Source of the DNA: Pavona decussata
Taxonomy: Eukaryota
Length of the DNA stretch: 64,000 nucleotides
Direction of reading: 5' to 3'
Assembly (NCBI GenBank): GCA_977016875.1
Contig: CDRNST010000052.1
Location: 434,001 to 498,000 of the forward strand
The position numbers and the translations under genes were made by a program. Within the stretch, counting starts at the first letter, position 1. Every line of letters starts with the position of its first letter. Of the stretch, positions 12-30,020 are shown piece after piece. The notes beneath the pieces were generated by a model. It did no database searches and was not told where the DNA came from. It was given only the letters and a program-made list of their open reading frames with translations.

Positions 12-3000
12 GCTCGTGGTCCGAAGAAGCATTTAAAGCGCTTAAATGCTCCGCATCATTGGATGCTTGATAAGTTGTCTGGTACTTTTGTAAGTATGCC
101 TCTTATTGATTGTAGTATCTGCCTCTGTTATCTGACTAAATAGCTTAAAATCGGTTTTGCTTGACCATATCGTCGGCTGAGAATTAAGTTGTTTCCTGTC
201 GATGGGTTCTTATTCAATGTTGAATTCTGTGAATAAGACAATTATCAAGAAAGCTTACTAGAAACCGTTTCAGTGAGTCCCAAGTTGAAAATATGACTTG
301 GAACTAAGAATTGGGTTTATATGAACAAAATTTTCCCATCTGAAAGTTTTATTTCTTTAGTATTATTTACCTCCCTTGCCTGTTTACAATGTATTGAATT
401 GATACATCGTACAAAAAGGGAGGTAAATACTATGCTCTTGGTTGTATTTCTTAAAAACCTGCATGTTCAACTCAAATTCCCTGACACTCAAAATGGCTAA
501 ATTGAAAGTGGGGGACACACAGACATGCAATCACGAACATGAATACTCTTTTACTGCCTTTTATCTGTCTATTTGCATCAAAAATACACTTCGTAACCAG
601 TTATAAATTCACATTTTTGAGAGAAATGATCATAGTTTATCTGCTTTTGAAATGACTCAATATTTAGCTCCATTTTGTACTTTTACCACATCAGACAGCA
701 ATGGAAATGGTGCTATAAATTTATAAGCAAGTTATTTGTTACTATTCTTCTCTGGTTATCGCTGGTATAATAAAACAAACTTCTTGTCTTTGTTTTAGGC
801 ACCACGTCCGTCCACTGGTCCCCACAAGTTGCGAGAATGTTTGCCTCTCATTGTTTTCCTCAGGAATCGCCTCAAATATGCTTTGACATATGACGAGGTG
901 AAAAAGATTCTTAAGCAAAGGCTGATTAAGGTTGATGGCAAAGTCAGGACTGACATTACCTTTCCAGCTGGGTTCATGGGTAAGGGTTTGCTTGAGAGTA
1001 CAAGATATTTGTCGAAATGGTGTAGTTTTTATACTTTTAACCGTTGCCTAACATCACTGTAACAAGCCATAGCTTGGTATGTTCAAGAAAGTGAATTCAG
1101 GGCAAGAAACTTCCTTTCAATTTCGTCTTAGTAGTGTTCGTAGCAATGGCCAGTTTTGAAGTTCATAAAGAGACTGGGCCCTAGTTTACACAGCATTCAA
1201 ATTTAAGAAATGAACGCCATTGCCAAAAAGATCGCATAAAAATTAGTAAGTTTACCAAGTTTGGTTTTGTTTCATTGCATAGTAACCTGATTGTGACCAG
1301 TCAAAGGTCGCCCAAAGTCCATACAGATGTCTCTAATTCTGAGATGGCGTCCCCCAAATCCATACAATGTCTCTAATTTTTTCCGATTTTTGAAAGCCTT
1401 CTATATGGTTGCAATCTAACGACAGAACCCCAAACTAAGTAAAACTGACCAATTTTAATGTGACCTTTCTTATGATGGACTCCAATTTCGGATTAAATGA
1501 AAATTTAAAATCTCATCCCCAGTCTCCACTTGCACTTAGAACAGGTAATGGCCAGCAAGACATTCCTCCAGTATGCAACCTTTTTCAGATGGGAGGGGAG
1601 CCATAAAGGGCTAATTCAATAATGCACCATTGTGCCCTGATTGTTTTTGTTGTAGATGTCATCACCATCGACAAGACTGGTGAGAATTTCCGTCTGTTGT
1701 ATGACGTGAAAGGTCGCTTCACTGTTCACCGCGTCACCAACGAAGAAGCTAAGGTTAGTGTTGGAATACTGGTTACTTTGTCGCTAATAAAGATGAGCCC
1801 GAGTCTGACAATGGAAAGACTCATTCAACTAGCATGGTTCGTACAATCTTGAAAAGGTTTTGAATTTTAGTAGTCGTCTTGAAAAGTCCTTGAATTCGGT
1901 TAAGGTCCTTGAAAAGTACTTGATTTCTTTATTAGGTCTTGAAAAGTCCTTGAAATTTCGTAATTTGTTTATTCGGTATCACTTTTCTGAAAAATTTGAT
2001 TTTGCCGGGTAAATTTGTGCATTGACGACTAATAACTGGCGATAACAATGGGACAAATGGTTGGTATAACACATGTAAGAATACATGAAGCAAACTTTGA
2101 CCTTTGCCTCAATTTCATGTATGTCTCACCAGGTCATGTGGGTTTGTCCACCACATGCGTTTGTTTTCAGGGGCTATGTGATCGGTCATGTGTAGCGTTT
2201 TTTTAAGCGAGGTATTTTTGATTTTCCCTTCGTTTGCAATTTAAATGAGCAATCGGCAAATGTGTATTTAATCGTAAATGGTTAACTGGTGCAAAGTTAA
2301 GCTGAGTGAAAGGATTCAAAGGCGACAAACACAAGACCATATGTTGTGTTTGTAATGAAGAGATCAACATAGAAAGCATGGGAGAAAGAGCCTTGAAGTC
2401 TTACATGAAAGGAGAGAAACACAAAAAGAAACGCTGGAACTGGATATAGACTCACTTGTGAAGTCAACAAATGATTTGAGTGTCAAAGCTGAAGAAACTT
2501 GGCAGCTGACTCTTGCCAATAAGTCCAGTGCTCTTTAATAGAAAAGCAGCCAAAGATAGGACTATTCCACTGCAAGAAGTTGAGGACAAACTAAATGGAA
2601 AGTTGGAAGCTCTAAAAGGCTGCTGAAACATAAAAATTTTATCATATTTGTTGAACAATATTGTATTGCTGTATCTGCATTTCAAAATTTATTTCTGTAC
2701 CTCAGACGTAAGTGCAAGTAAAATAGCCGGTGGTTGATCATTTTACAGAATTTCATTACAGAGACTAACTTCACCAATCAAGGCTGAACTTTTTGAAAAC
2801 CGGAAATAAGTTATGACTGAATTGAGTGTTTTAGGTGTAAAAAGGGGACACAAATATTGATATACTGAATAAACATTGGTCCTTGAAAACTAGTTTTTCT
2901 CCTTGAAAAGTCCTTGAAAAGACCTTGAATTTTGTTTGTCTGAAGTTGTACGAACCATGACTAAGCCGTCTGTAGTCCATTTCAGCTTCTGTGATGCTTG

Positions 3001-5040
3001 TATGAATAATTGAAGGACTCAGTGCAAACAGGGCCTGTATGTGCAGTTTTAGGCCAAATTTTGAAATACATCCAATTTAAACAAAAATTGAACAAGTTAT
3101 CCAATTGTTACGCACTTGCTGTAACAATAATTTGTTTGTTGGTAGGCTGATTTCACTGCAGAAATGATTTAATTCTTCCTCATCAAATTTAGCCTAAAAA
3201 TGCATATATAGGCTCTTTCATTACTCAGCTCTTCAATAATTTTATTATTTCTTTGCATGTGCCAAAAAACAAATTCTCAAGAGGTAAAGATACAGTTCTT
3301 AAATCAAAATTAATCGGTCTGAAACTAGCAGTTAACAGGTGAAGCTGGTGGTAATGTGTGTGTTGTTTCTCCCTGGGGATGTTATTTTTCATTGGTATGG
3401 AGCAAGTGATGTTTAATAATTGCAGAAATTTGAAGTATGAATCAGCCCTGATTCTATTGTGTTACTACTGATGCTCCTTCATCTTAGTGTTTAACTTTTA
3501 TTGTAGCTATAGAGAGAGACTGATTAATCAGTTTACACTGGCATTGGTGCCACCGTGAACAGTACATTCTGAAAGATGTGCTGTTTGCTTCTTGTTAGTT
3601 TGTCATCGCTGGTTTGACAACCATGTCTCAGTGGGTCTTGTTTCTTTCTTTAATATATATTTCTAACATTCTTCTGTCTTGCCTTATAGTACAAGCTTGG
3701 TCAGGTGCGACGTGTTGCCACTGGTGCCAAGGGTATCCCCTACCTTGTCACACACGACGGTCGCACCATCCGCTATCCTGATCCCTTGATTGCTGTCCAG
3801 GATACTGTTGTCGTAGCGATCAAGACTGGCAAGATCATTGATTTCATCAAGTTTGACACTGGAAATCTTGCCATGGTTGTCGGTGGCCGTAACATGGGCC
3901 GAGTTGGTGTTGTCACTCACCGTGAAAGACATGCCGGTATGTTATACTGTTGCTTGGTTCACTACAATGCTGATACATAACATACGACCCGCCACCTTGA
4001 AAACAAGCCGACAAAGTGAAGTTTTGGCGGATGTAGCTCAAAGAAAAGCCATTGAAATCCTTTTGAATTCTGGCTAGATGTCCATGCAACAGAGCCAAAA
4101 AACTGTCAATTTTGCCAATGTTACCGCTCTGATGAAGGGCTAACGCTTGAAATGTCAGCACTCAAACCTCTACAGTGGCTAATTTACCTTTACTTAACGA
4201 CTCTGTGGATAAATCAAACATTCAAGACATTTTTACCAGCTGACAGTTGATTTCCAAGCCAGCTAAAGCTAAAAGAAAGGGCATTTTTTTGCAAGTTGTA
4301 AGACTTTTTAACTTCACTGCACATGATAGTTTGCAAAGTCAACGATGAACGCGAGTTAGCATATTTTCATGTGCAATGAAAAGATTTCATTAAAAATATG
4401 GTATGCACTAAATGACACCTTTAGCTTGAACTGCCTCAGAAATCAATTTGAATAACATTTTGTCGTAGCTGGTTAAATTGTCAATTCTTTTGGCCCTGTT
4501 GCCTTGAAATCTTGTCAGAATTCAAAATAGCTTTAGTGGGTTTGTTTGATTGACAGCGGCCAAAACCCAACTTTATCCCACTCTTTTGAAGGCAGTAGGT
4601 TCCATGTTAGGGGTAACCACTGTAATTAAAAAGAACTCAAATATTTTGTGATCTTGCCTAAGTTATTTAGTAAACCTTGAACACATGGCATTGAGTAATT
4701 TATTTGAATTGTGCATGTTTCTTCATCCTCCTTGTTGAAAGAAGTGGTTTTCACGAGGAGGGCAAAAAATAATAGGCTTTGATGATGTTGAGGTGGCTCC
4801 AAGTGAAGAGTTGGTTGAACATTGAAATTTCATTGTTTGTGGATTTCAGGTTCATTTGACATTGTTCATGTCAAAGACAACACAGGTCACCAGTTTGCCA
4901 CGCGAATCAGTAACATCTTTATCATTGGCAAGACAAACAAGCCTCACGTGAGCCTCCCCAAGGGTAAAGGAATCAGGCTCACTATTGCTGAGGAGCGAGA
5001 CAGAAGGCTGCAAGAGAAGGCCAAAATGAGCTCCATGTAA
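12..5040 (+). CDS. RPS4: 40S ribosomal protein S4 (eS4); exons 12-89, 799-979, 1656-1753, 3690-3936, 4850-5040; ATG exon lies upstream of the window
   Basis: Translates [21 protein letters not shown]...[11 protein letters not shown]...[12 protein letters not shown]...[14 protein letters not shown]. All introns are GT-AG with matching phases; 795 nt plus ATG gives 265 aa. ATTAAA at 5061. Confidence 0.98.
1833..2959 (+). mobile_element. Internally deleted DNA transposon (hAT5-like) in RPS4 intron
   Basis: 14-bp TIR CATGGTTCGTACAA/TTGTACGAACCATG; 5-bp flanks ACTAG/ACTAA; subterminal (C)CTTGAAAAG repeats at both ends; decayed N-terminal Zn-finger fragment ([10 protein letters not shown]...[27 protein letters not shown]) near 2255-2430. 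Confidence 0.8.
3007..3243. mobile_element. Degenerate MITE-like inverted repeat
   Basis: ~55-bp imperfect arms AATAATTGAAG...TTTTAGGCCAAATTT and AAATTTAGCCTAAAA...CTTCAATAATT. Confidence 0.5.
3399..3477 (+). ncRNA. Candidate intronic box C/D snoRNA
   Basis: 6-bp terminal stem GGAGCA/TGCTCC, box C-like GTGATGT at 3406, box D CTGA at 3468-3471, internal TTGA/CTGA; 79 nt; sense strand of a ribosomal protein gene intron. Confidence 0.55.
4126..4225 (+). mobile_element. Penelope-like terminal-repeat fragment with minimal type I hammerhead ribozyme motif (4126-4159)
   Basis: GCT-CTGATGA-A-GGGC-TAAC-GCTT-GAAA-T-GTC-AGC: stem I GCT/AGC, conserved CUGAUGA and GAAA boxes, stem II, GUC triplet. Confidence 0.7.
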
Positions 5041-22700: not shown

Positions 22701-25700
22701 TATGCTGACACGTGAAACAAGGCTAGTTTTAGCCTGAAAAGTAAGGCTATTTTAACAAGTTTTCCACGGTGAATTTTCTGTAAATTGGCTCAATTTTAGG
22801 ATTCAACTGGTATTTGTACTCCAAAAAATCTATAATAAATAAATAGCAAAAGCGAAAAATTGCAGAAATTGGCCAAACGTAAACTATGTACAGAATTTGT
22901 TTTGACTTTACGAGGAGATACTTTGAAGTTTGTCTCTAATTACCCCCAAAAAAAGCAAAAATTTGACAGCGCAAAATTTGGACAAACCTGTTTTGAAACT
23001 AGCTAGGAGTGAAGGAAACAACAGATGTATCATCTGCTGGTTACCATGGAAATGGGGTTTTCCAGTTGTAACGGTGTTTTTAGCAACGCATAAGGACTTA
23101 AATACTCAAAACTATGTTTGAACCCTGATATTTTCAAAGGGCTGAAAGAACCAGAACATCAAGAAAAATATTTATTACTACCAGCGTAAAAATGAAGAAA
23201 TGGTATAGAGCCACCTTTGGTTAATAAACAAAAGTGTCATTTATAAAAGGGGTCTTGCCTCAACAGCCACTAAGTTAAACACAAAGTCTGACAAATTACT
23301 TACTAGGAAATTTCTTTCATTTTTTGGTTTCTTGGCTCTTGGAATGTACAAACTGAGATACATATTTGGTTATGGGACTCTTAAGTCACCAATGTGTCTG
23401 AAAGAAACCTGTTGTTTTTATTCACATTTCACAACTTGAAAAGTATAAACTAAGTGAAGGAGTTGGCTCCCTTATGGTGGAATTTCTTGAATGTTTATTG
23501 AATTTATAGTGATTACCAGTCTTAATTTGTAACAAGTGCTAATAAAAGATTTTTGATCAATTAATTAACCTCTGCCGGTGAACGTCCCACACAGGAACAT
23601 TGAGGATCCTAATCTGTTACTATACATAGGATCTTGTCAAGTAGGATCCTGTATACTACCAAAGGATCCCATATGCATGCGAGACTTCTACCAGAGTAGG
23701 GGCAATTTGTATAATATCATTCAGTAATAAATTATTACTGACTTTACAATACAAATTGCTCCTGCTTATTGGATATCATTTGGTATTCCTGGGTTTCATT
23801 CGTTTACTCTTGGATTGTTTATGTTTCATGTGTTTTTGTGGACAGTTCTGGTGACCGTGTGTCTTTGCTGTGTGTTGACAAACACCCCACTCAGCCGCAC
23901 CTACTAGCTGCAGGAGGTCAAGATGGTGTATTGAGTATCTGGGATATGCGGCAGGAACTCTATCCTGTAACACTACTAGAGGCACATAGTGCAGAAAGTA
24001 AGATGCTGTATTGTTGTTCTGGAGTGTATCTTTATGTTTTTACTGTTTTGTCTTCTCTTGTGACCTTAAGGCTTTTAAGAGCCACTGTCTGTAAATATCG
24101 AGAATCCGGCGTCAGTCGTGAAATTTTCAATTTCTTCATATTTTGCCCAAATAACCTCTATAGTGAGTTATTTTCGAAAATACTATTCAAAGGACCTGAA
24201 GCGCTTTAGTTTTTTCAAAATCTAAGAAAGTTCGAAAAACGCCATTTTGGCCTTCCGGCGGCGTCGAAACTACAATAAAATTATGCATTTTCTTTTCGCT
24301 CGTTCAGATCAACGCAATAACATCTATCGATGTACTTTGGTTCACTCATAACAGAACTCTTGATCTCCCTGAATCACTAAATTATTTTGAGAAAGGTGTT
24401 GAAAACTGCTTGTTTTTGGCTGTTACAATTACCCTTATTACAGCGCTTTAGCGGATAAGGTAATTTTAGCTAACTTTAACAGCAACAAAAGCCCACTGGT
24501 ACATGTAATTTGAAGTTGAAACTAGCATGGCCTTAAAGCCCATTCTTTATAGTTTGTTGTGTAAAAATTGCTGAGGCGGCCCGACAAAAGTGTCCTGTCG
24601 AGAGACGGAAACGTGAAGTGTACTTTCTGGAATTTCGACCCTTCACGAAGCGAACAAGAAGCATCCCGATTCCGAACAGAACCGCACATTGTAAAATCTA
24701 CCGATGGAAACCTGTTTCGAAATCCTGGATGCATCAAAACAGTCTTGTACTCAAAGCTACAATCCTTTTTGATTGAAAATATTATTATGTTAACACTTGT
24801 GGAAAACAGGAGACGTTTAGTTCAAGCCGTGAAATATGTAATTTAACGCCGCGCCGAGCAGATATCTACAGTACCACGCACGTGTACATGACGCAAGATT
24901 GCTCAGTTTCGTTCCGCTATTATTTTACCGTTAAAAGTAAAAAGAAGATCCTCAATATCATGCATGTTGTCGTCTTCCTTCGTTCATTCTTATCTCAAGA
25001 TTTTTAAGCTCTGAAGGGAACACGCTACACGCCAAAAAAAACCAAAACAAAACAAAACAAACAAACAGGGCGATCAAATTCCAAGACAAATGCAAATACG
25101 GTAGCTACAAATCCAGGCCCGATAAATTTAGTATTCAGTTGATTAACGCACATTTATTTTATATTCCAGTGATAAGGCATAATGTACATCAAATGATTTC
25201 GTAAACAAAGTAAAAACAAACTTTCAGCAATGTCAAAGTACCGTGGGAAAGCAACTGTTAACAAGCTTTTTAAATTAATTTGTAGTTGGAAACAAAACAA
25301 TGTCAACCTTACCGGTCTTTTGGCAATCCTTGAGAAAATTAGTGAATCCCTTGCTTCTATTGCTATGTATGACAAACTTGCTCCTATATGTAAAGTTAAA
25401 AAACCGGTAGACTTGTTTCCTCCAAAGGCTGTGAATTTACACTGGAGTATTGCAATTACCTTCCGTCAAGTACAAAAGTTACTTTTATAGTTGACCAATC
25501 ACGCCATATGGTCCAGATTTCTTCCTCTACAAAACGTTCCAGAACGTCGTTTGTGGCCAGATTTTGAAGTAGTTTTGTTGGCCTGTCCCAATAACTTTTG
25601 TCCTCTGGGAAGCTTGCAAACGGGCACTGTTATGGCCTTGTCGGGAACGGTGTGTAAATATTCGACTTGGTGCCTGTGCGGCTCCAGCAACTGTGGAATG

Positions 25701-26245
25701 CGTGACAGTCTATCGGGCGTCCAAGGGCATCTCGCATTTTGCCAAGAAAGGACAGTTAGCGACGATTGTGGAGTGGACAGTGAATCAAAATTGCTGCTTT
25801 CCCAAACAGGTAAGGTGTCAAATGATTATAAACTTCACAGTACACATTGTCACGGTTTTTAGCGCTCAAATCAGTGGAGCCGCGCGCGTTGCGCGTTGCG
25901 CGTTGCGCGTTGGGAGGGTGTAGGGGGTGGGCAATTGAACTGGAAAGTGGAAAAAAAAAAATCACAGGAAATTTTTCAACAAGGCTGCTGCTAAGGCCTT
26001 GTTTTGTTTGGCTCCTGTGTTTAAATGCAAATGGTTCTTTTAGGACCTACAAATTAAAATAAAATTATTTCTAAGAGAAAAGTTTAAAAAATCCAATTGG
26101 TTAAAAAAATCGTCCGTGCACGCGCCCGAAAAGAAAAAGGTAAGAGGAGAGAGCGGTCGGTCCCTTGGATGATTAGAACTTCTAGCTAGCAGGATTCCAG
26201 CTTGATTATAGCTTTCAGAGTTATAGCCCTTGCTCTGAAATGAAA

Positions 26246-26326
<81 letters not shown>

Positions 26327-29300
26327 AAAATATGAGCGAGCACGATACACTCCTTTTTTTTAGTTTGTAACTTTAAATTTAAAGTGAAGTAATTTATTTA
26401 ATGTCAAAATCATAGGGATTACTTGCGCAATCTCCCGAGCCAGAGGCGCATGATAAAGTGCTTCCCTATAATTATTAGTAGATTGGAATTCAATTTGATT
26501 TTTGAGGAGAGGGGAAAATCGGAGTAATCGGAGAGAAATCTCTCCAAGCAAGGACGAGAACCAACCATTAACTAAGCCCTCTTATGAAACTGAGCACTAG
26601 AATCGAACCCGGGCCATATTCAAACCAAATTTCCGGTATAACTACCTACATGATAATGACGACGAGCTGTGCTCTTTTTTCATCTTTTTTCATGTCCAGC
26701 CAAGCCTGACGTTTCGGCTCGTTCGATGGATGCCCGATGGCTATGCCATGCTGATGAGCCCGAAACAGTTGTCTACAAAGGACTACACACTCAGAGCAAG
26801 AGAGGGAGTTGTAATCTTCCAAGGGACCAACCGTTTTCTCTTCTTACCATTTTTTGTTTGTTTGTTTGTTTGTTTTTCGCGGAGGGTAAGGGCCGGGCCT
26901 GATGCTGATGCTTCTGAGCAGCTGAATTTGTTTTTCAACTTTAGCCAGTTTGGGAATAAGTTTTTTTTTTAGGTCCTGAAAGGACCATTTGCATTTAAAC
27001 ACAGGAACCAAAGAAAACAAGGCCTTAGCAGGAGCCTTGTTGAAATTTTTCCTTTGACTCAATGTGCGCGAGTTTTTCCACCTTCTTGTTCCAATGCCCA
27101 CCCATACCCCCACCCCCCCCAACTCCCAACGGGCGCCTCCACTGATCTGAGCCCTAAAAACCGTGACAATGTGTAATCTGAACCTTGCAATTATTTGACA
27201 TCTTACCTGCTTGGGAAAGCAGCAATTTTGATTCACTGTCCTCTCCACAATCGTCGTTAACTGTCCGCGAGATACCCTTGGAAGTCCTTTTTACACCGCG
27301 CGATAGACTGTCACGCATTCCACAGTTGCTGGAGCCGCACAGGCACCAAGTCGAATATTTACACACCGTTCCCGACAAGGCCACAACAGTGCCCGTTTGC
27401 AAGCTTCCCAGAGGACAAAAGTTATTGGGAGTTATTGGGACAGCCCAACAAAACTACTTCAAAATCCGGCCACGACGTTCTGGAACGTTTTGTAGAGGGA
27501 GAAATCTGGACCATATGGCGTGATTGGTCAACTATAAAAGTAACTTTGGTACTTGACGGAAGGTAATTGCAATACTCCGGTGTAAACTTACAGCCTTTGG
27601 TGGAAACAAGTCTACCGGTTTTCTAACTTTACATATAGGAGCAAGTTTGTCATACATAGCAATAGAAGCAAGGGATTCACTAATTTTCTCAAGGATTGCC
27701 AAAAGACCGGTGAGGTTGACATTGTTTTGTTTCCAACTACAAATTAATTTAAAAAGCTTGTTAACAGTTGCTTTCCCATGGTGCTTTGACATTGCTGAAA
27801 GTTTGTTTTACTTTGTTTACGAAATCATATGATGTACATTATGCCTTATCACTGGAATATAAAATAAATGTGCGTTAGTCAACTGAATACTAAATTTATC
27901 GGGCCTGGATTTGTAGCTACCGTATTTGCATTTGTCTTGGAATTTGATCGCCCTGTTTGTTTGTTTTGTTTTGGTTTGGTTTTTTTTGGCGTGTAGCGTG
28001 TTCCCTTCAGAGCTTAAAAATCTTGAGATAAGAATGAACGAAGGAAGACGACAACATGCATGATATTGAGGATCTTCTTTTTACTTTTAACGGTAAAATA
28101 ATAGCGGAACGAAACTGAGCAATCTTGCGTCATGTACACGTGCGTGGTACTGTAGATATCTGCTCGGCGCGGCGTTAAATTACATATTTCACGGCTTGAA
28201 CTAAACGTCTCCTGTTTTCCACAAGTGTTAACATAATAATATTTTCAATCAAAAAGGATTGTAGCTTTGAGTACAAGACTGTTTTGATGCATCCAGGATT
28301 TCGAAACAGGTTTCCATCGGTAGATTTTACAATGTGCGGTTCTGTTCGGAATCGGGATGCTTCTTGTTCGCTTCGTGAAGGGTCGAAATTCCAGAAAGTA
28401 CACTTCACGTTTCCGTCTCTCGACAGGACACTTTTGTCGGGCCGCCTCAGCAATTTTTACACAACAAACTATAAAGAATGGGCTTTAAGGCCATGCTAGT
28501 TTCAACTTCAAATTACATGTACCAGTGGGCTTTTGTTGCTGTTAAAGTTAGCTAAAATTACCTTATCCGCTAAAGCGCTGTAATAAGGGTAATTGTAACA
28601 GCCAAAAACAAGCAGTTTTCAACACCTTTCTCAAAATAATTTAGTGATTCAGGGAGATCAAGAGTTCTGTTATGAGTGAACCAAAGTACATCGATAGATG
28701 TTATTGCGTTGATCTGAACGAGCGAAAAGAAAATGCATAATTTTATTGTAGTTTCGACGCCGCCGGAAGGCCAAAATGGCGTTTTTCGAACTTTCTTAGA
28801 TTTTGAAAAAACTAAAGCGCTTCAGGTCCTTTGAATAGTATTTTCGAAAATAACTCACTATAGAGGTTATTTGGGCAAAATATAAAGAAATTGAAAATTT
28901 CACGACTGACGCCGGATTCTCGATATTTACAGACAGTGGCTCTTAAGCCTTTTAATTCTTTCAATTTTTTCTGATCATTGCTTTTTCTAAATCCTTAAGA
29001 AACTCAAACGAAATAGGAGCCTGTGCTTGGCTGAGTCTCAAAAGAAATTGATCAGTCATGAATCTTTATTGTTGCATTTTGGAATACATAGAGAGCTTAT
29101 TCTTAATGTGAGCAAGCGAGTTCTAAGGTGCCTGTGGTGGGGTACTCTACTCACATGCAAGGATGAGAGCCAACAACAAACTCAATCCACTTATGATGTT
29201 GAGTCAGATGTTTTCAAACCCGAGTGGCCACTCAGCTATTAACAATGTCTGAACATTTGGCATTTTTCAGAAAGGCATTTTCTGATCATATCTGCTACAT

Positions 29301-30020
29301 CAAATGAAATGTGATATTCCTTTTTAATTTGTTGTATTTTTCCTTTTGCTTAGCTTAATAATAACAAATAACATGGTTAAAAATCCCAGCTGGCAGGAGG
29401 CAGACCAGCTGGCTAATTACAAGTGAGGCCAAGGAGTTGAACTTGGGGCTACCGAGAAACAACTCCAGATAGTGGTCAGAGCGGGACTTGAACCCGGGAC
29501 CTCCAGATTATAAGTCCGGCGCCCTAACCACTCGACCATGCTGCCTCCTGCTTGATAAAAAAAAAAACTGGTTACGTTTGCCTTATCAGTCCAGTAATGG
29601 TTGTTAGTGACTGTTTTCAAGTAAAATGATGGTATTAGTTAATTTTCACCTTTTGTTATTTCAGTATGGGAGGTGAAATTTCATCCCCTCAGTCCAGACA
29701 ACCTATTTACATGTTCCGAGGACGGCTCTCTTTGGCACTGGGATGGTACATCTGTGGCAGTACAAAGTGTTACAGGGATCCCAGGCACCAGTAAAAGCTA
29801 TCTTCCAAGTAGTATTGGTAATGGTGCTGGCGTGGGTGGTGGATATGACAGCATAAGCCCTTGGCTGTCAGTGGACGCAACAAAACATAAAATGGAGACA
29901 TTTTCTTTACTTCCCTATAATAGACTGTCAATCAACTCACTGGATATCCAATCAAAACACTTATTGAGTGGGAGTGACTGCGAAGCTATTTTTATTATCA
30001 AAGATCTTGTCATAAGATGA
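16745..30020 (+). CDS. NUP43: Nucleoporin Nup43 (WD40, Y-complex); exons 16745-16873, 16977-17102, 20151-20228, 21713-21881, 22433-22568, 23846-23997, 29665-30020
   Basis: AKYVGHKVAKVRW...FVTGGWDD; CVDKHPTQPHLLAAGGQDGVLSIWDMR; WEVKFHPLSPDNLFTCSEDGSLWHWD; 381 aa; intron 1 is GC-AG. Confidence 0.96.
17638..17781. repeat. Palindromic interspersed-repeat hairpin
   Basis: TGGTAATTGAACT...TGGTCTGAAATCATAC...GTATGATTTCAGACCA...AGTTCAATTACCA, ~65-bp imperfect arms. Confidence 0.7.
17993..19313. mobile_element. 1.3-kb non-autonomous TIR element in NUP43 intron 2
   Basis: 30-bp perfect TIR CATTACAACTTCACGCCGATTTAAGTGTGT; no TSD resolved; no coding capacity recognised. Confidence 0.7.
19671..19828. 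mobile_element. CAA...TTG hairpin MITE
   Basis: CAATCTCATACCCATAGTCCTTAGGCTCTTTGGCCAG and CTGGCCAAAGAGCCTGAGGGCTCTAGGTACAAGATTG are imperfect complements. Confidence 0.65.
20354..21060. mobile_element. Non-autonomous element with ~150-bp imperfect TIRs (CCGTA...TACGG)
   Basis: CCGTATACCTTTAGAGGTGTCTC...AAAGCTTATAGAGCTGGC is mirrored by GCCAGCTCTATAAGCTTT...GAGACACCTCTAGAGGTATACGG. Confidence 0.75.
26246..26324. repeat. (ATG)n microsatellite, ~26 units
   Basis: Uninterrupted ATG run in the spacer of the foldback element. Confidence 0.95.
26480..26615 (-). mobile_element. Truncated tRNA-derived SINE (same family as 57188-57465)
   Basis: Minus strand reads GGCCCGGGTTCGATT...GTTGGTTCTCGTCCTTGC...TTTTCCCCTCTCCTCAAAAA, similar to 57241-57362. 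Confidence 0.6.
29359..29551 (-). mobile_element. tRNA-derived SINE
   Basis: Minus strand: A box TGGTCGAGTGG, B box GGTTCAAGTCC, non-tRNA body, TTA/TTG-rich tail. Confidence 0.8.

Follow-up and report, generated by a model that had tools for sequence, protein, structure and literature searches.

A TTAA-flanked foldback transposon with ~2-kb inverted arms in the last intron of NUP43 in the stony coral Pavona decussata

The NUP43 locus and the architecture of the element

The window analyzed here is a 64,000-nucleotide stretch of Pavona decussata DNA (assembly GCA_977016875.1, contig CDRNST010000052.1, positions 434,001–498,000 of the forward strand). The element lies in the last intron of NUP43, and the exons that flank this intron match human NUP43, confirming the intronic location given in a preliminary description of the locus (Table 1). 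The 5’ splice site GT that follows the penultimate exon is at 23998–23999, and the point of insertion is 78 nt downstream of this splice site. The element occupies the transcribed strand of this housekeeping gene; without it and one TTAA, the intron is 799 nt in length. A SINE-like repeat (29157–29556) is also located in the intron.

The preliminary description, made from the sequence alone, reported a 4864-bp unit with ~2-kb inverted arms, GA...TC termini, TTAA on both sides, and no recognizable transposase, and all of these points were confirmed. Self-BLAST recovers the inverted arms (element positions 1–1975 versus 4864–2888, 94.4% identity) with the 912-bp loop between them. The outermost parts of the arms are nearly identical (24075–25215 versus 27806–28946, 1141 nt, one mismatch), and inward of these the arms pair at 97, 99, 89, and 89%. 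The termini are GAGCCACTG...CAGTGGCTC. A Pfam search of the open reading frames of the arms and loop gave no matches, and the reading frames in the arms are not preserved in other copies of the family; the arms are thus non-coding. The arms have no tandem subrepeats and contain short microsatellites only, and an (ATG)27 microsatellite lies within the loop (26246–26325). A segment of the loop (~26390–26700) is found at very high depth in read contigs, and therefore also belongs to a high-copy repeat. Read contigs connect a single high-copy repeat family with the loop as well as with the SINE-like repeat, although BLAST detected no significant similarity between the latter two.

Table 1. Features of the element and of the surrounding NUP43 locus (window coordinates).
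Feature	Positions	Strand	Description
Penultimate NUP43 coding exon, 3’ part	23841-23997	+	Human NUP43 214-263, E 2.6e-21
Last NUP43 intron	23998-29664	+	5667 nt, GT..AG
Left TTAA target-site duplication	24075-24078	.	TTAA at left end in 21/21 copies
Whole element	24079-28942		4864 bp; self-BLAST and arm pairing
Left arm	24079-26053	.	Element 1-1975; starts GAGCCACTGTCTG
Arm-to-arm gene-conversion tract, minimum extent	24904-25184	.	Element 826-1106; right-arm states in the left arm
Loop	26054-26965	.	912 bp
Right arm	26966-28942	.	Element 2888-4864; terminates CAGACAGTGGCTC
Right TTAA target-site duplication	28943-28946	.	Directly after 24074 in empty-site contig
Last NUP43 coding exon, TGA stop included	29665-30020	+	Human NUP43 264-378, E 9e-27

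An empty site at the same locus

Empty-site alleles had been suggested as a check on the insertion, and one was found in a contig from a public run (X1, record 1; 703 nt). This contig joins 23681–24074 directly to 28943–29251, with a single TTAA and five SNPs relative to the window. The filled and empty sites differ by exactly the element and one TTAA. As another haplotype lacks it, the window copy is a young and still polymorphic insertion, not one fixed in NUP43. In contigs of the X5 and X11 runs, the match to the window ends at 24079, and the letters past this point do not fit the element. No contig that bridges flank and element at the NUP43 locus occurs among the matches listed, and the filled allele thus rests on the assembly and the exact TTAA duplication. 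The two flanks of the window copy carry a 13-bp near-repeat (TTAAGGCTTTTAA and TTAAGCCTTTTAA). This was considered as a longer target duplication and rejected, as it reflects a 9-bp tandem that pre-existed in the target, and the other 20 copies have TTAA only.

A foldback family in the coral genome

The element belongs to a family of about 50–70 copies in the coral genome. The arm and loop were matched at 33 or more loci, with the arm-loop-arm order kept. A 28-nt pattern for the terminus had 142 matches genome-wide (68 + 74) versus none for a reversed control, and two internal arm motifs had 106 and 95 matches, respectively. The further TTAA-flanked copies that had been expected of a non-autonomous foldback family were found by this genome search, and, as expected, no transposase is encoded. 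All 21 copies read are flanked by TTAA at both ends, and their flanking sequences are unrelated. The ends across these copies read GAGCC...GGCTC immediately inside the TTAA; GA...TC is found in 20 of the 21, and one has C as its first base. Copies are typically 4.0–4.9 kb in length, with shorter derivatives of 1.2 kb (C78:2829823-2831059) and 1.6 kb (C89:2269537-2271175). Identity over 41 arms is 99.1% at bases 1–100 and ~90% at bases 900–1300, making the termini the best conserved part of the element and one that is under constraint. A scan of metagenomes for the family terminus gave no match, and literature searches on TTAA foldback transposons and on Kolobok in corals turned up no description of such a family.

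In a tree of the inner arms (positions 1142–1975) from all copies, left arms group with left arms and right arms with right arms, the two clades being divided by a single change with 100/100 support. This separation establishes that the foldback transposes as one whole unit. Within the conversion tract of the window copy, the left arm has the right-arm state at eight of nine diagnostic sites; outside of it, position 59 and all sites from 1134 inward have the left-arm state in the left arm. The two arms appear to evolve partly in concert through arm-to-arm gene conversion. To this, and to ancestral arms that diverged little close to the termini, we attribute the near identity of the outer 1141 bp.

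The ends resemble those of Kolobok elements

Kolobok elements have a TTAA target and 5’-RR...YY-3’ termini, the latter in contrast to piggyBac (PMC9587614), and the combination of a TTAA target with RR/YY ends has been used as a Kolobok signature (PMC6004289). The coral family has both features, with TTAA flanking every copy read and occurring singly in the empty site, and with 5’-GA...TC-3’ ends in all copies but one. The earlier suggestion that TTAA and a purine-purine start fit Kolobok, not piggyBac, is thus supported by 21 copies and by the published signature. With such ends, a transposase of the Kolobok superfamily is the most likely mobilizing enzyme, an assignment we favor with some reserve.

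The termini of piggyBac elements are usually CC...GG, which the GA...TC ends of the coral family do not resemble; the TTAA target agrees with piggyBac as well as with Kolobok. It is nonetheless unlikely that the family is mobilized by the piggyBac transposases of this genome, that is, by the other TTAA-specific superfamily. These would account for the TTAA duplication in 21/21 copies, and also for the exactly one TTAA in the empty site, as would be left by seamless excision or seen at a site never filled. Such transposases also appear to be plentiful, with at least 119 matches to PF13843 (DDE_Tnp_1_7; 116 of 357 candidates scored), many with uninterrupted frames of 588–594 amino acids. However, none of these matches lies inside any copy of the family or any candidate partner, and the ends are G-A...T-C, the RR/YY ends of Kolobok being what separates the two superfamilies (PMC9587614).

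A predicted RNA hairpin

The element is predicted to fold with an energy of -3724 kcal/mol, with 1889 of 1980 left-arm bases paired to the positions that mirror them and perfect helices of up to 908 bp. A single transcript of the whole element would form a stem of ~1.9 kb. The preliminary description had NUP43 pre-mRNA form a ~2-kb double-stranded RNA stem; this holds for the in silico fold of the element only, and the element may have an effect on NUP43 RNA. An ADAR or Dicer substrate, a splicing modifier, and a fragile site were named there as potential roles.

We consider it improbable that the element serves the host or its own regulation as a hairpin-RNA locus, whether by supplying siRNA or ADAR pathways or by modulating the splicing of NUP43. 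The extent and energy of the predicted stem are in keeping with such a role, as is the location in a housekeeping gene, where the element lies on the transcribed strand and 78 nt away from a splice donor. However, another haplotype lacks the insertion, and the element is therefore no conserved part of NUP43. In Mu-killer-type silencers, an inverted duplication of transposase-coding sequence gives rise to double-stranded RNA directed against the autonomous element, whereas the coral arms show no match to the coding sequence of any known transposase. Lastly, in one RNA library, changes of the A>G and T>C types did not exceed other changes in frequency, in a comparison based on contigs of paralogous copies, which cannot show editing.

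Candidate sources of transposase

Two low-copy relatives, located by coordinates only, were found at C48:1076603-1087038 (10.4 kb) and C88:2421973-2435479 (13.5 kb). Both have the terminus and the motif at offset 149, with the same 2-nt variant, and both lack the arm motif at offset 626; their overlap with the foldback family is confined to the terminal ~170 bp. These two candidates are the likeliest source of transposase. The shared ~170-bp ends, if transcribed, could target the transcript of such a partner. We regard as speculative the further idea that GAGCC-ended elements are moved by a TTAA-targeting lineage that is neither piggyBac nor canonical THAP/KolX Kolobok, with the 2-kb hairpin copies restraining this lineage as sources of double-stranded RNA.

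Transposases of the Kolobok clade are DDD/E enzymes with a C/DxxH motif and a zinc finger, often of the THAP type. The C/DxxH motif is common to Kolobok, MuDR, P, and hAT transposases (PMC9587614). Genome-wide matches to PF13843, PF05485, PF20478, PF10551, PF04434, PF00929, and PF09588 do not overlap the termini of the family, and no piggyBac, THAP, KolX, MULE, SWIM, RNase_T, or YqaJ match lies inside the C48 and C88 candidates or any long copy (116 of 357 piggyBac candidates and the best 150 of 621 THAP candidates were scored). To our knowledge, Pfam has no model for the Kolobok transposase, and so the absence of profile matches in the candidates is weak evidence. In keeping with a Kolobok enzyme, THAP matches occur within a few kb of KolX/P2RX7_C matches at ~20 loci of the genome; Kol0-type Kolobok elements carry these two genes as a pair.

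The extra length of the longer copies read is due to nested, unrelated elements, and none of three such elements is the partner. The 7.7-kb copy (L043) is interrupted by a Harbinger in which the DDE_Tnp_4 gene is intact and accompanied by a Myb-like gene, the 7.4-kb copy (L034) by a second foldback whose arms are minisatellites, with a kinase fragment, and the 9.1-kb copy (L050) by a 4.4-kb element with ~520-bp inverted ends.

An enzyme from a lineage as yet unlinked to TTAA targets, such as the MULE/SWIM type, is improbable: a MULE-domain match (C334:2395654-2395962) lies ~8 kb from a family terminus (C334:2405041), but no MULE or SWIM match occurs in the C48 and C88 candidates or in paired copies, with all candidates scored.

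Discussion

The preliminary description raised the concern of an assembly foldback, and we set this aside: that the palindrome is such an artefact, or a local inverted duplication formed in place, is extremely improbable and, as a general explanation, has been refuted. The near-perfect outer arms do look like chimeric hairpin artefacts, and support for the locus comes from the assembly, but the same structure, equally sharp at its ends and bordered by TTAA on either side, is present at 20 further loci whose flanks are unrelated, the empty and filled sites differ by just the element and one TTAA, and the inner arms have family-wide left/right differences.

The best overall explanation, in which we have considerable confidence, is a non-autonomous TTAA foldback family that is mobilized in trans, inserted recently into NUP43, and has arms evolving partly in concert. 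The foldback is a cut-and-paste DNA transposon composed of two ~2-kb inverted arms around a ~0.9-kb loop, with no gene. A transposase encoded elsewhere in the genome, possibly by the 10.4- and 13.5-kb relatives, would recognize the conserved ends, excise the foldback whole, and insert it at TTAA, duplicating these four bases. The copy in the last NUP43 intron is a recent insertion that is still polymorphic, and arm-to-arm gene conversion keeps the arms partly in concert.

The family is well defined, recently active, and TTAA-targeting, and resides in a stony coral. It represents no new kind of element or mechanism, and the NUP43 copy, although real, is a rather ordinary case of a transposon insertion. 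It does provide a clean example of whole-unit foldback transposition combined with arm-to-arm gene conversion. As the insertion segregates beside a NUP43 splice donor, carriers and non-carriers form a natural comparison for three questions: does a 2-kb hairpin in an intron undergo editing, is it diced, and does it disturb splicing?

MITEs are non-coding, high-copy elements under about 800 bp that have inverted termini and duplicate their target; at 4.0–4.9 kb, typical copies of the coral family are too long for this class, even though 1.2- and 1.6-kb derivatives exist. Drosophila FB elements have arms of tandem subrepeats and 9-bp target duplications, and Galileo is a long-TIR element of the P superfamily with 7-bp duplications. 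The coral family resembles these two in its very long inverted arms, short middle, mostly non-coding copies, and ability to fold back, but differs in having arms of complex sequence without subrepeats and a TTAA target; it has neither the subrepeat arms nor the 9-bp duplication of the Drosophila type.

Similarly to non-autonomous Kolobok elements such as the Xenopus T2-MITE, the coral family has a TTAA duplication, an RR start and YY end, and non-coding copies that are probably mobilized in trans (PMC6004289, PMC9587614). T2-MITEs, however, are a few hundred bp in length, their inverted repeats are short, and their ends are AGGRR, whereas the coral elements are 4–5 kb with arms of ~2 kb and GAGCC ends, and have two candidate partners as a putative source of transposase. 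Non-autonomous elements derived from piggyBac share the strict TTAA target and single-TTAA empty site, but not the GA...TC ends, RR...YY being set apart from piggyBac (PMC9587614), and no piggyBac gene is associated with the coral family. KolobokP (Kojima and Bao 2022) likewise combines the Kolobok signature with unusually long terminal repeats. Those repeats are direct, ~450 or 660 bp in length, and each has short inverted repeats, and KolobokP encodes a transposase and a His-Me nuclease; the coral elements encode nothing, and their long repeats are inverted and ~2 kb in length.

Structure of the foldback element in the last intron of NUP43

Self-comparison and reading of the ends bear out the preliminary description of this element (24079–28942) as a pair of long inverted arms around a loop, with TTAA on both sides and GA...TC ends. 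Element positions 1–1975 align with positions 4864–2888 at 94.4% identity, leaving a 912-bp loop between them, and the termini are GAGCCACTG...CAGTGGCTC. The outer 1141 nt of the arms, given as 100% identical by a repeat finder, contain one mismatch, near 24137, when both ends are read; pairing further inward is 97, 99, 89, and 89%. The window contains no N. The arms carry small microsatellites only, with no tandem subrepeats found. ARAGORN found no tRNA gene, and Rfam had no match inside the element, its sole tRNA-like match lying outside. None of ten ORFs of the arms and loop has a Pfam match, and among 15 full-length matches to a 123-aa arm/loop frame in other copies, 4 keep it open. The ORFs are not kept across copies, in line with the original statement that the element has no recognisable transposase.

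The placement inside a NUP43 intron is likewise correct, as the flanking frames, ending at 23997 and starting at 29665, match human NUP43 residues 214–263 (E 2.6e-21) and 264–378 (E 9e-27), respectively. The GT and AG signals at its ends give an intron of 5667 nt, or 799 nt once the element and a single TTAA are taken out. The left TTAA begins 78 nt downstream of the splice donor. The target was a small tandem (TTAAGGCTT TTAAGCCTT TTAA), with the element in the middle TTAA; this tandem mimics a 13-bp target duplication, which we rejected.

A very high-copy SINE-like repeat lies in the same intron, just right of the element. Its BLAST comparison with the loop gave no direct similarity. Read contigs join it through 20–37 variable letters to a loop segment ending near 26526, and because of this link the two seem to belong to a single abundant repeat family.

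Coordinates of features in the window, in other copies of the family (L), and on contigs of the genome assembly (C)
Feature	Coordinates	Description
TTAA target-site duplication, left	24075–24078	read from sequence
TTAA target-site duplication, right	28943–28946	read from sequence
Outer arms (1141 nt)	24075–25215; 27806–28946	paired by repeat finder
Intron splice signals	23998–23999; 29663–29664	GT; AG
Tandem at target	24066–24078; 28943–28955	mimics 13-bp duplication
SINE-like repeat	29157–29556	very high copy
tRNA-related segment of SINE-like repeat	29473–29545, minus strand	Rfam tRNA, 38 bits
L043 (7.7 kb), nested Harbinger/PIF	L043:3663–6153 (C259)	intact genes: uninterrupted 407-aa DDE_Tnp_4 transposase (E 5e-32); 279-aa Myb/SANT-like protein
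L034 (7.4 kb), nested 2.6-kb foldback	L034:3998–6558 (C162)	arms of 30-nt minisatellites; protein-kinase fragment (Pkinase, E 6e-11)
L050 (9.1 kb), nested 4.4-kb element	L050:2250–6650 (C68)	inverted ends ~520 bp; abundant in genome
Tandem array of L050 insert	C372:9666–125015	>20 units, period ~4.7 kb
Candidate partner terminus pair	C48:1076603–1087038	10.4 kb
Candidate partner terminus pair	C88:2421973–2435479	13.5 kb
MULE match and family terminus	C334:2395654–2405041	~8 kb apart
THAP + KolX/P2RX7_C, examples	C56:2444638–2447420; C6:6042937–6045667; C109:468014–471248	
THAP + YqaJ, examples	C15:325929–328585; C28:985170–987826; C56:6675408–6678064; C62:208058–210714; C144:2672185–2674841	identical scores

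The insertion is young and polymorphic

Public sequencing runs, all in the form of contigs and several labelled coral metagenome, supplied the empty-site allele. A 703-nt contig from run X1 places its bases 310–703 on 23681–24074 and its bases 1–309 on 28943–29251, spanning the site with a single TTAA and no element; five flanking positions differ from the window. The element junctions have only five bases (TTAAG) in common, so a 31-mer assembler jump is impossible, and the contig is a true empty-site haplotype. Contigs from runs X5 and X11 agree with an empty site, more weakly than X1: their match ends at 24079, and the letters beyond do not fit the element. If X1 is the sequenced colony rather than another colony, the insertion is heterozygous. 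Inner-arm tree distances of 0.6–1.1% to the three nearest relatives indicate that the subfamily of the window copy is young. The insertion at NUP43 is thus real, young, and polymorphic.

A family of foldback transposons

A query of arm plus loop matched at least 33 other loci at 85–97% identity, each with arm, loop, and inverted arm. We read 20 copies fetched from these loci alongside the window copy. In each of the 21, TTAA stands directly outside sharp GAGCC...GGCTC ends, in unrelated flanking sequences, establishing the proposed transposon family and its further TTAA-flanked members. Genome-wide, a 28-nt terminus pattern (≤3 mismatches) occurs 68 + 74 times and its reversed control 0 times; conserved arm 28-mers occur 106 times (offset 149) and 95 times (offset 626). 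These counts give a family of roughly 50–70 copies or fragments. Copies are usually 4.6–4.9 kb, with a deletion subfamily of 4.0–4.2 kb and two short derivatives (1.2 and 1.6 kb). Literature searches found no account of the family.

Four longer copies were read: L040 (5.6 kb) and three that were analysed in detail. The extra length of L043, L034, and L050 consists of nested unrelated elements, and we rejected these copies as autonomous partners. The two-gene Harbinger/PIF copy in L043 is possibly active, judging from its sequence.

Evolution of the arms

Identity to the window left arm among 41 arms falls from 99.1% (bases 1–100) and 98.6% (101–200) to ~90% by 900–1300, the pattern expected if the transposase binds at the ends. 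A maximum-likelihood tree built from the inner arms (element positions 1142–1975) puts all left arms on one side and all right arms on the other side of a single branch (100/100 support, a single change). The arm difference is therefore older than the spread of the family, and the foldback transposes as one unit. Left and right labels are intermixed in the tree of the outer 1141 bp, where the two arms of L039, L050, and L047 are each other's nearest relatives and the window left arm groups among right arms.

We defined 113 diagnostic sites separating left from right arms in three sibling copies. At position 59 the window left arm shows the left state; between 826 and 1106 it shows the right state at 8 of 9 sites, and from 1134 inward every site is again left. 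The right-arm states mark a tract of gene conversion between the arms, at least 280 bp long. This tract and the low ancestral divergence in the first ~800 bp account for the near-perfect outer arms.

Predicted RNA hairpin

The ~2-kb dsRNA stem proposed for NUP43 pre-mRNA is supported as far as in silico prediction: the 4864-nt element folds at -3724 kcal/mol, with 1889 of 1980 left-arm bases paired with their mirror positions and a longest uninterrupted helix of 908 bp. A giant hairpin would thus be physically expected, given an intron transcribed in one piece. If formed, such a hairpin would draw the flanks close to each other, and the intron may then act much like its 799-nt ancestor. The suggested effects through editing, dicing, splicing, and fragility are putative. 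In the one RNA library, a metatranscriptome in contig form, the sole junction contig has a different flank and so comes from another copy; the mismatch spectrum has no A>G excess, in contig data unable to show editing.

Candidate transposase and probable relationship to Kolobok

Pfam searches of the genome scored the best 150 of 621 THAP and 116 of 357 piggyBac candidates. No THAP, KolX/P2RX7_C, piggyBac, MULE, SWIM, RNase_T, or YqaJ match falls between paired family termini, and the suggested autonomous partner is represented by two candidates with common ends, on C48 and C88. The offset-149 motif, with the same two-base inner-edge variant, occurs at both C48 ends and the C88 left end, and the offset-626 motif is absent from both elements, which limits the sequence common with the foldback family to ~170 bp of ends. 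Sharing of this extent is the rule between autonomous and non-autonomous relatives, making the two elements, located by motif positions, candidate partners.

On C334, a 270-aa frame with a MULE-domain hit of 41 bits accompanies a family terminus whose arm matches bases 1–887 only; the two may be neighbours by chance or belong to a composite element. At five loci, a 523-aa frame with a THAP domain has a 545–584-aa YqaJ-exonuclease frame ~2 kb away, a predicted young two-gene transposon of ISL2EU or KolobokE type.

The genome has many intact piggyBac genes. THAP matches also lie a few kb from KolX/P2RX7_C at ~20 loci (Kolobok-type gene pairs; spacing 2–4 kb, mostly without stop codons), which points to a putative, sizeable Kol0-type Kolobok population in the coral. 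Kolobok transposases are kin of MuDR, with zinc fingers. Kolobok elements make TTAA duplications and have 5'-RR and YY-3' termini, unlike piggyBac (PMC9587614), and Xenopus T2-MITEs were put in Kolobok on these two features (PMC6004289). The foldback element has both, its GA...TC termini differing from those of piggyBac, and the early preference for Kolobok fits this published signature. The element is a foldback transposon that is non-autonomous, targets TTAA, and has ends of Kolobok type.
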